From: Aplysia californica
Taxonomy: Eukaryota
NCBI RefSeq assembly: GCF_000002075.1
Contig: NW_004797305.1
Location: 1,749,575 to 1,813,574, forward strand
Length of the DNA stretch: 64,000 nucleotides
Direction: 5' to 3'
The notes below the pieces were generated by a model that saw only the letters and a program-made list of their open reading frames with translations, did no database searches and was not told the origin of the DNA. The position numbers and the translations under genes were made by a program. This document shows, piece after piece, positions 12,031 through 18,700 of the stretch (position 1 is its first letter; each line of letters starts with the position of its first letter).

Positions 12031-12796
12031 TATAAGTGCAAATATTTTTATATATCTTGCTAATGGGTTAGTGTCCTAGCGCCTGTAAAATGAAAGGGGC
12101 AATTTATGTTTACCAGGAAGCTAAAAATGTTTCTTAGTGTTCTGGGGTTGTATAGGTTTAAAATAACAAAAGCATGCTGTTGATTATGGATATGCACAGC
12201 TGCCAACCTGTATATATGAAAAAAACCCATTTTATTGATATGTTTTTGAGGGTCTGAGTACCGAAGTCCATTTTCGTGGTGAAAATATGTATTCTGTTGG
12301 GTTTTTTTTGTTATTTTGTTCCTTATATGGACTTGCTGATGCTGGAGAAAAATTATGAACTTTCGATCTAGACCAGATTTGCGAATTATAATGATGATAA
12401 CAAAGCTCATAAATAAACTGGAGTTGTGTCTGTAACCATAGTTACAGATTTTTACTTGACATTTCTCACATTATTGGTTCAAATCTGCTTTGAATAGCTT
12501 GAACTGATTTGCATGTTAGAAAAGTATGTATGAAAATTGTGGCGAGGGGTTACTTGGCCAATGTCCACCATCTTGACCCGCCACATGAGTAGAGTCTATT
12601 TTTGGGTTTTGAAAAGTTGGCAGGTATGAACGTGCAATGTAGTATAACTACAATTACTAGTATTATTATAACTTGGTGTTATATTGAAGTGAAAATGATA
12701 CCACTCACTGTGTTAAACAAGTTTTGTCACTACCCTGAGATGATGTTGTATTGCAGATTGTGAAAGCTTGCACAGTTTGCCAAATCATCCTTCACA

Positions 12797-15700: not shown

Positions 15701-18700
15701 ATTTTTTTTTTTTTCAGTACAAGTTGTAAACTTTGTTTTATTGTGTGGTTGAATTCTGACCTTTTTGCTCATAGTGTAGGCCTTCCTTTCTACTTTGACA
15801 GGGGTCCCAGAGGCATGGACTTGCTGAACTCATCAGGGCCCAACTCTCGTGGCCGAGGTCGAGGGCGGGGCCGCAAAGATATGACCCCTGGGGAACGGGT
15901 GGCCAACTGGGTAAATGAACGAGAAGCTCGCCGATTGAATAAAGAACGATGGAGTGGCCGTTCTGGGAATAACAGTAGAGCTCAGTCAGATATGACTGAT
16001 GCCGGGGAGGCTTCTTTGAATTCTGCTCCAGATGCCACAGAACAAGAGATCAGTGGTGACAGGTAATTGGGTCTGAGAATGAATTTGATTTTTCATGGGG
16101 CAAGAACTTTTCTTTTTAATTTACATTGTTTATAAAAATGTTGTTGAAAGTAGTACAGTGTAACTTGGATATAAGGAAGTCGTTGGGCGCGACTTTTGAT
16201 CTCGTTGAATCCGAGTTCGTTACAGCAATGTGAGTAACAGGTTGCGTCACAGTGTAGGGCTTAGCCTTTGGCAGTGTCTGTTTCCACAGACCAGCATGTA
16301 ATTAATTACGTAGTTTTACATCTGCTATGTCCAGACAAGCTTTTCATTATCCAGTAGCCGGGTGGAGGGGATGGATATGATTGTGATGCCTCTGACTTTC
16401 TGCGTCCGAATAGCTTGTGCCTACGGCATTGTCATCTCCCCCCCCCCCCCCAACCCAACCAAACCCGTCATCGCACTAACAGCCACCTGACTGAGCTCTC
16501 TGGATCCTGGCACACACCAAGACATTTCACATCTTATGCACATGTTAATATCGCACGCATGTGTTGGTGTGAAAGAGGGCTTCCATTTGGCAGCATAAGA
16601 TGTGAGCAGTAGGCTAGGCTAAGTGTATAATGATCCTTGGTTCAAGTGCAATTGCTGTTGTTCTTTTCTGGAATAAAGTAGATAAGGTTCGTTGCGACTT
16701 CGTTGAATCTGAGTTTGCTCATTTATGTGTTCATTGAATCTGAATTATTTTATTTTAATAAGTTCATAATATGGGGAATCTGTTTCTTTTCGTTGAATCC
16801 GAGTTCCACTGTAGTCATTTCTTTCCAAAGGGTTTGGTAAAAGTAAAATGTTAAGATTCACTGGGATAAGGAGATTATTCAATGAATTAACCTACTCTAA
16901 TGGCCGCCTGTCCAAGACAATTGTCTTTTTGTAGCATTTCCACACAAAAAAAAAACTGGTGGAGGTTCCAGAGTGCGGCTGGACCTTACTACAACTGAAT
17001 AGTGGTGCTTTTTTTTGTTTTGTTTATAATTTCTTTGCTGCTTCTCTGAAGGACCTTTCCTTAGGTCAGCATACTTTTTGCATGATTTTTCCTTTTCCAG
17101 CTCCATATTGCAAAGATTGTGTTATTTTGAACCTGTAAATTTTCTATTCATCATATCTTGGCCTTTCTAGATTTAAATTTAAAAGCAACTTGTTTTCAGC
17201 TGAGTTGTTTGGTTGATTGGAGATTTATAAAACCTTTTGATATGACAGATAATGTGTAAAAACATCCTCTCTTTTGTAACCTACATACATGAAATATGTT
17301 GCTTACATAAACTTTTCATTGTGAAATTTTCGTTGCTGCCCTTGGCTCATTGCTGCTTCCATACTCTTGGGAACTTGAACATGGCGGCATCCCTGATTTT
17401 AAAAGTAAAATGGCCTTTCTTAGACAGCTGCGTGTTTTTAAATGACAACTCATTGTTTGTTTCAACTCTTCAGCAGACAAAAGTTTGAAACTTGACCACC
17501 TTGCAAACAAGAAGAGTTGTCTTCCCAGAGGAGAGATATTAACATGTTCTTATGCACAGTAGAATTGTAAATGTGCTGATTTATCAATGTCATGCTCATA
17601 CCGTGCCGGAACAACATGGAGGAACTGCTGCTTTTTCTTTTCTCATCCTTACTATCGTCATTTTCCTCTACTTCTTTTGTATGTTTTCACTCTCTTGTGA
17701 ACTACTTTTTCATGGGTGCCTTGATAGTCAAAGCAGACTTTGTGCTGTTTAGGCTAGAGAGGTGAGCAGAATAAGCCTGATTCCCCATTTGGACTTCTTT
17801 GTTGACATCCACCCCTAGGCACTCATATGACCTAGAATGCAGTTGCGAGCGCTGTAAAACCTTACTAAAAAAAGGAGAGTTCTTCCATAGTTTTGGTTGA
17901 TATCTCTTATTTTTTTAAAGGTTCTCAAGTAACATTAGGCCAATGTGTATTTTTCGAATGTTGAAGCGTGTCACCTCCATTTTAAAATGGGATAATGGAC
18001 TCCATACTTGCCTTGATTGTGATTTAATTTTTGTACCTTCACTGTTAACTTTATGGCGATCTTGTGATTCAGTTTCTTTTTTGCAAATCTTTTTAGGGGA
18101 ATTTGTAATTACTTTTATTTTGCAAAATCTAACTTGATGCACTTTTTTTTCATGTTTAAGGTCAAAACAGAAGAAGCATGGAGTGGCACTATATGTTCCA
18201 CCTTCACTTCGGAGGAAAAACGTGTCTACATCAGAATCTCCCAGTTGTGCAGAAAGTCCCGACAACAGCTCCTCTTCTGCTCAGCAAACATCTTGTCATG
18301 CAGATTCTCATTTACCGCAAGCCTCGTCTGATGCTGCTGTTAGTAGACTCTCTGGTATGGAGCAGCCCGTGGAAAGTGTTGATGACTGTAAACAAAGGGC
18401 GAGGTCTGATAAAATTGAAAACAGCGGTGATGCTCAACCTGCATCAGTCAAGCAACGGGGAAGAGGAAGGGGTAAGAAGAAACCTGAGATGGAGATCTAT
18501 GTTCCTAGGGCACTGAGAGAGGCTAAGCGAACCCCTAAACCTGGAAAACCGTCCAGCTGGGAAAGTAACAGTCTCAAAGTTGAACAACATATTACTGGCC
18601 AGTTCTCTACTCCTGAAGAGGTTGTTGACAATACTGTCTGTGAAGACTCCAATACCTCACTACCCGCAGATCCTTTCACAATGGTCGCAGACAATCGTGA

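Follow-up and report, generated by a model that had tools for sequence, protein, structure and literature searches.

The closest described system is human R3HCC1, for whose initiation at a CUG codon there is evidence from conservation, from reporters and ribosome profiling and from N-terminal peptides (PMC3105428, PMC5714202, PMC8287933); an N-terminal peptide that backs the human start is reported in PMC8287933. Given several out-of-frame AUGs, Ivanov 2011 argued that the CUG is the sole R3HCC1 start in mammals (PMC3105428), and Tang 2017 reported that the human CUG reaches ~30% of a Kozak AUG, with eIF5 increasing and 5MP decreasing this output, and described the protein as conserved in vertebrates (PMC5714202). 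The human context is listed as CACC-CUG-G (PMC5778536 Table 1). The second well-described case is EIF4G2/NAT1/DAP5, whose non-AUG start is kept in vertebrates and invertebrates (Takahashi 2005, cited in PMC9977666). Why some genes retain a weak start codon is stated to be unresolved (10.1101/2022.05.02.490320). Both the human CUG start and the cross-phylum non-AUG start of EIF4G2 are therefore already known, and the breadth of conservation is apparently unreported: in the literature covered on R3HCC1 with non-AUG or CUG initiation, mostly outside subscription journals, conservation of the CUG start in invertebrates is not described, and the R3HCC1 passages deal with human or mammals alone.

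Like mammalian R3HCC1, the Aplysia californica gene studied here has a strong-context CUG (C-4, A-3, G+4) and, given the acceptor at 12756, an upstream in-frame stop; several AUGs out of frame precede the first one in frame, and in both the R3H domain lies in the part that depends on the CUG. Unlike mammalian R3HCC1, it is a single 854-aa invertebrate gene that also carries R3HCC1L-type YVP motifs, and the first in-frame AUG, which wanders in mammalian R3HCC1, is fixed just past the R3H domain in molluscs. EIF4G2 resembles this family gene in having a non-AUG start across vertebrates and invertebrates, and the human cases of both respond to eIF5 and 5MP; it differs in that its vertebrate start is GUG and its ascidian and fly starts are non-AUG codons, whereas the R3HCC1/R3HCC1L-family gene uses one CUG in one context from molluscs to amphioxus, with some AUG reversions. 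The fly orthologue of R3HCC1/R3HCC1L is presumably CG2162. For CG2162, a FlyBase analysis lists an AUC start (PMC4528330 Table S3), which is non-AUG as in Aplysia but AUC rather than CUG, in a table entry that makes no link to human R3HCC1. Vertebrate R3HCC1L (GIDRP88/C10orf28) shares with the Aplysia gene the C-terminal RRM-like/coiled-coil region (47%, rat) and the YVP motif, but unlike the full-length Aplysia product it has no R3H domain and an annotated Met start; it resembles the 765-aa AUG product of the Aplysia gene.

Gene structure and family identity in Aplysia californica

Within the window, that is, the whole stretch of 64,000 nucleotides analysed, the R3HCC1/R3HCC1L-family reading frame encodes 854 aa from CTG 12797 to TGA 25574-76 in a 10-exon model whose introns are all GT-AG (Table 1). 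The initial annotation had proposed a CUG start at this place, and the positions it gave (AG 12755-56, TGA 12761-63, eleven sense codons, CTG 12797-99 in ACA-CTG-G, ATG 15815) were all correct on recounting. Its observation that the R3H domain lies upstream of the first in-frame AUG also holds, as the R3H exon carries codons 36-85 and ATG 15815-17, the earliest in-frame ATG, is codon 90, beyond the domain; the genomic frame is free of AUG from the stop at 12761 until codon 90. The donor placed 107 nt 3′ of the CTG recurs in 7 orthologous genomic loci.

Table 1. Features of the Aplysia gene with its predicted CUG start, and of its leader, in window coordinates
Feature	Position	Strand	Basis or remark
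Candidate first-exon end: ATG 6024-26, donor GT 6029-30	6024..6034	+	Hypothetical, donor score
Likely splice acceptor AG of 5′-UTR intron, 40 nt 5′ of the CUG	12755..12756	+	Sequence only
Start exon: 40 nt of UTR and codons 1-36, including the first R3H-fold helix	12757..12903	+	Ends in phase 2
In-frame TGA, 12 codons above the CUG	12761..12763	+	Sequence
Predicted initiation site: C-4, A-3, CTG (12797-12799), G+4, C+5	12793..12801	+	Conservation across lineages
Out-of-frame ATGs 12837, 12852 and 12882, with ORFs of 8, 3 and 9 codons	12837..12884	+	
R3H-domain exon, codons 36-85	15024..15170	+	Pfam PF01424, E 1.6e-7, above gathering score
Exon with first in-frame ATG 15815-17 (G-3, G+4), CTG 15824-26 and RG repeat	15802..16062	+	
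Large low-complexity exon with two YVP motifs, at residues 181 and 283	18161..19652	+	
Six 3′ exons (20021-20111, 20565-20646, 22027-22097, 22603-22698, 23127-23267, 25500-25576): RRM-like and coiled-coil end, stop TGA 25574-76	20021..25576	+	

In an attempt to place the gene, three features of the R3HCC1/R3HCC1L family were found together: an N-terminal R3H domain (PF01424), two copies of a sequence resembling the YVP motif near the R3HCC1L N-terminus, and a C-terminal RRM-like and coiled-coil region with 47% identity to rat R3HCC1L over 199 aa (E 1e-56). The YVP motif of R3HCC1L is an EJC-binding motif, and the Aplysia copies are putative EJC-binding sites. The family gene is single-copy in the Aplysia assembly, which suggests a pre-duplication gene. 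It is best read from its sequence as the single invertebrate R3HCC1/R3HCC1L-family gene, a name preferable to R3HCC1; this placement was made from rat R3HCC1L, the YVP motifs and the R3H domain, vertebrate R3HCC1 having not appeared among the matches.

The R3H fold was inspected in the gastropod-like spliced contig L001, whose R3H exon is 74% identical to that of Aplysia. From residue 16 onwards, L001 covers positions 1-58 of the PF01424 model, and in the predicted structure of its first 80 residues (pLDDT 90) residues 12-31 form a long helix, after which come the R3H strands, with R3H domains as the closest structural matches at modest E-values (Foldseek E 2e-3 to 2e-2). In this structure model the helix 12-31 is encoded by the CUG exon, so a complete R3H domain requires translation of that exon. 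An ESM Atlas search returned bacterial R3H clusters only, below 0.9, and a region search with protein P0060 gave no match besides P0060 itself.

By using the large exon as query, we retrieved the public Aplysia californica protein P0096, which is 100% identical, 765 aa long and devoid of the R3H domain. P0096 contains all eight 3′ exon pieces without a mismatch and lacks the two 5′ exons; this exon-by-exon match indicates that ATG 15815 is the start in the public model, a truncation that the initial annotation had expected of automated gene prediction. Likewise, the R3H region is missing in 23 of the 33 named invertebrate annotations examined, and several others have unrelated N-termini. In Aplysia the missed CUG is shown to be the cause of the truncation, and in the other invertebrates it is likely to be the cause of the missing R3H region. 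That the public model, with P0096 beginning at AUG 15815, is correct, and that the R3H exons are relics or go untranslated, is hardly credible, as these exons keep an open frame, a Pfam match above the cut-off, a single genome copy, 74% identity to L001 and synonymous variation across phyla.

Several further elements were observed around the gene. The 3′ UTR contains a tandem duplication of ~110 nt right behind the stop (window 25597-25800). On either side of the CUG and R3H exons lies one copy of a repeat in which short internal motifs recur (10880-12030 and 16160-16810); it is probably a non-autonomous DNA element. Fragments that by eye resemble decayed non-LTR retrotransposon ends occur at 8650-9430 and 10997-11356, in the likely 5′-UTR intron. 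Upstream, a divergent ankyrin-repeat gene at ~4040-4990 on the minus strand (weak Pfam Ank matches) may share a promoter region with the CUG-start gene, somewhere in 5000-8400; far downstream, at 53797-54096, an exon matches Pfam GCOM2 (Gdown1/POLR2M-like, E 4e-5).

Comparison of the start codon across Bilateria

A search with the Aplysia R3H exon matched 65 relatives. Many annotated relatives had dissimilar N-terminal stretches followed by a common Leu-Ala...Arg-Tyr-Leu segment, and the codon compared was defined as that seven positions ahead of the Arg in this segment. CTG was found at the homologous codon in 12 of 12 lineages, which span molluscs, arthropods, an echinoderm, a hemichordate and amphioxus: Aplysia, L001, Plakobranchus, the chiton Liolophura, the scorpion Centruroides, the butterfly Pararge, Branchiostoma, the crinoid (feather star) Anneissia, the acorn worm Saccoglossus and three further animals. 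Among the other Leu codons of the same exons, CTG accounted for only 8 of 49 (Fisher p 7e-8 against 12/12, with lineages treated as independent, although all came from one search rather than a random sample and all are bilaterians), and the conserved Leu of the RYL motif is written with four different codons. C-4, A-3 and G+4 were invariant in the 12 CTG lineages and C+5 was present in 11 of them, a strong and conserved initiation context in the sense of PMC3105428. The initial annotation had guessed that the non-AUG start is conserved in this invertebrate; the comparison strongly supports this, over a far wider range of animals than it supposed.

Alignment of orthologues, a check that had been proposed along with that guess, revealed in addition to the conserved CTG and context where protein conservation begins. 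Pairwise protein identity was 0.05-0.24 above the CTG and 1.0 at codons 1, 2, 8 and 10, and both column identities and third-position variation, with synonymous variation across phyla in the R3H-region codons, show that coding-type conservation starts abruptly at the CTG. Where the CTG was absent, near-cognate or cognate start codons appeared instead. In the nemertean Tubulanus, GTG occupies the codon immediately above, in an unchanged context; eight distinct annelid-like sequences from metagenome host contigs, whose nearest named proteins are from Capitella, have ATG at exactly the codon of the CTG, with C-4 retained in one only, and were counted as one event since they form one clade; and Met stands two codons lower in scallops, where the AUG was taken from the annotation of two scallop proteins, and in a group of marine RNA contigs. 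Across these orthologues the start codon is CTG, GTG or ATG and no other Leu codon. This alternation, together with the conserved non-coding flank, is at the level of sequence comparison the signature of a start codon.

Some sequences were handled separately. In Saccoglossus (L009:2992-3003) the annotated ATG comes three codons after the conserved CTG, and either could start a nearly identical protein. Proteins P0054, P0056, P0044 and P0069 (from the locust, the nematode Plectus, a metagenome and Biomphalaria, respectively) show a Leu in the start column that follows Lys, Arg or Asn; a CTG is likely there. The first Met of P0017, P0040, P0053 and P0124 was left out of the AUG counts, because their gene caller writes TTG/GTG starts as Met; the called start of L005 is a TTG, from a gene caller that also labels TTG/GTG as Met. 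In amphioxus, the TAG two codons above the CTG is possibly the acceptor itself and was excluded as a delimiting stop. An in-frame stop with no in-frame AUG between it and the CTG was seen in the Aplysia genome (given the acceptor at 12756) and in L001, where the stop lies 45 nt 5′ of the CTG.

The reading that takes the CTG for a plain internal Leu, with splicing bringing in an upstream AUG exon in frame behind the TGA, was weighed against these data. Two additional AGs between the TGA and the CTG, ending at 12766 and 12775 and missed by the initial annotation, could accept such an exon, so the Aplysia genome alone leaves room for it; several weaker upstream donors are able to supply an in-frame ATG, and public models of the scorpion, amphioxus and Plakobranchus do join an upstream AUG exon, with extensions that share no similarity. 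However, the best donor (GT 6029) is out of frame with either AG, no AG occurs from the stop to the CTG in the spliced L001, and the phase of candidate acceptor distances varies among species. Moreover, protein conservation is absent upstream of the CTG, the public Aplysia model has no such upstream AUG, and an AUG exon would give no account of the CTG-only codon use, the C-4/A-3 invariance or the CTG/ATG exchange. We consider this reading very improbable, and judge from the comparative evidence that the full-length, R3H-containing 854-aa protein very probably starts at CUG 12797-99.

The human context CACC-CUG-G fits the invertebrate consensus. The human R3HCC1 start, a putative homologue of the invertebrate CTG, probably lies one codon further up. 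As codon and context are common to protostomes and deuterostomes, a CUG start would have been present in the last common bilaterian ancestor, with later returns to AUG in the annelid-like clade, the scallops and the group of marine RNA contigs. For the mechanism, we propose from established non-AUG biology that a scanning 40S subunit with Met-tRNAi would accept the CUG part of the time, aided by the near-optimal context, and that protein output would be low and governed by start-codon stringency (eIF1, eIF5, 5MP/BZW), as for human R3HCC1. A conserved hairpin just 3′ of the CUG, of the PTEN-beta type, was considered and rejected: among ten loci, z-scores ranged from +1.3 to -1.5 in nine, and -4 was reached in Plakobranchus alone.

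The downstream AUG and the number of products

Ribosomes that pass the CUG would mostly run into the three short out-of-frame ORFs, overlooked by the initial annotation, whose ATGs, by analogy with the human gene (PMC5714202), are likely traps for leaking ribosomes; some may re-initiate at AUG 15815 and yield an R3H-less form. The initial annotation had proposed that leaky scanning gives two isoforms. The three out-of-frame ORFs speak against this proposal, and the molluscan Met-Ser and the AUG swap in Aplysia described below speak for it.

In molluscs, a Met-Ser sits 13-16 residues past the R3H motif. In Aplysia, the CTG at 15824-26 aligns with this conserved Met, and ATG 15815-17 stands three codons above it (window 15815-15826), at a position where L001 has GTG. 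Judged from this alignment, the Aplysia ATG looks like a substitute for a second start that the gene requires, with a product that would resemble R3HCC1L.

We give an even chance, within the CUG model, to the reading that the CUG is effectively the sole start, as argued for mammals, and that AUG 15815 is an internal Met. Three out-of-frame AUGs are found in both Aplysia and L001, in L001 and Plakobranchus the AUG conserved in molluscs stands in a weak context (C-3, A+4), the first Met beyond molluscs is scattered 5-86 aa past the R3H domain, and scallops retain Met-Ser despite an AUG as their annotated start. On the other hand, Met-Ser recurs without change amid a variable linker in 13 of 13 mollusc-type sequences, it is replaced in Aplysia, where CTG stands in its place, by a strong-context AUG three codons up, and the trap ORFs are merely 3-9 codons long and end ~150 nt before AUG 15815, a length and distance that would allow re-initiation.

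Somewhat short of an even chance, again within the CUG model, is given to the reading that molluscs make two selected proteins, an R3H-containing one from the CUG and an R3H-less one from the AUG. The invariance of Met-Ser after the R3H domain extends through gastropods and scallops, the oyster, mussel and abalone annotations begin at it, and the AUG shift in Aplysia is apparently compensatory; in addition, a short form would mirror vertebrate R3HCC1L, which lacks the R3H domain and begins near the YVP motif. Yet Leu-Met-Ser is perhaps a protein motif, of which Aplysia Leu-Leu-Asn would be a tolerated change, the AUG context is weak in the relatives, out-of-frame AUGs intervene, and a fixed Met is not found outside molluscs. 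When exclusive non-AUG initiation of the EIF4G2, TEAD1, TRPV6 and STIM2 type was taken as the yardstick, the out-of-frame AUGs favour it, and the conserved molluscan Met-Ser and the strong context at 15815 speak against it; the one-protein and two-protein readings are about even.

Isoforms could also arise through the leader. GT 6029 is the best-scoring donor within 4900-12756, and the computed join 6028 to 12757 creates a 3-codon uORF that ends 33 nt before the CUG; the uORFs of L001 differ from this candidate. The ATG-AG end at 6024-6028 is in frame when joined to 12829, 15024 or 15802, so that besides the CUG form minor AUG-started isoforms might be produced if the candidate first exon is joined further downstream and exons in between are skipped. 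We regard this as improbable, as the first exon is hypothetical, the phase agreement has a 1-in-3 chance, loss of the CUG exon deletes the first R3H helix, and L001 has no such uORF.

Implications for the R3HCC1/R3HCC1L family

One speculative extension, which we consider unlikely, is that since the bilaterian ancestor the single CUG in its single context has let start-codon stringency switch R3HCC1 between two proteins, one with R3H from the CUG and one without R3H from the AUG, and that vertebrates split the two forms between R3HCC1 (CUG, R3H) and R3HCC1L (AUG, no R3H).

The new element of this analysis is an identical codon and context in protostomes and deuterostomes, accompanied by natural AUG reversions, which adds the family gene to EIF4G2, the standard vertebrate-invertebrate case. 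The comparison defines a natural CUG context, including C-4 and C+5, and reveals that most public invertebrate annotations checked miss the first domain of the protein. The natural AUG reversions make the cost of losing the CUG testable in cells and model animals, and the CUG quirk described for mammals looks ancient.
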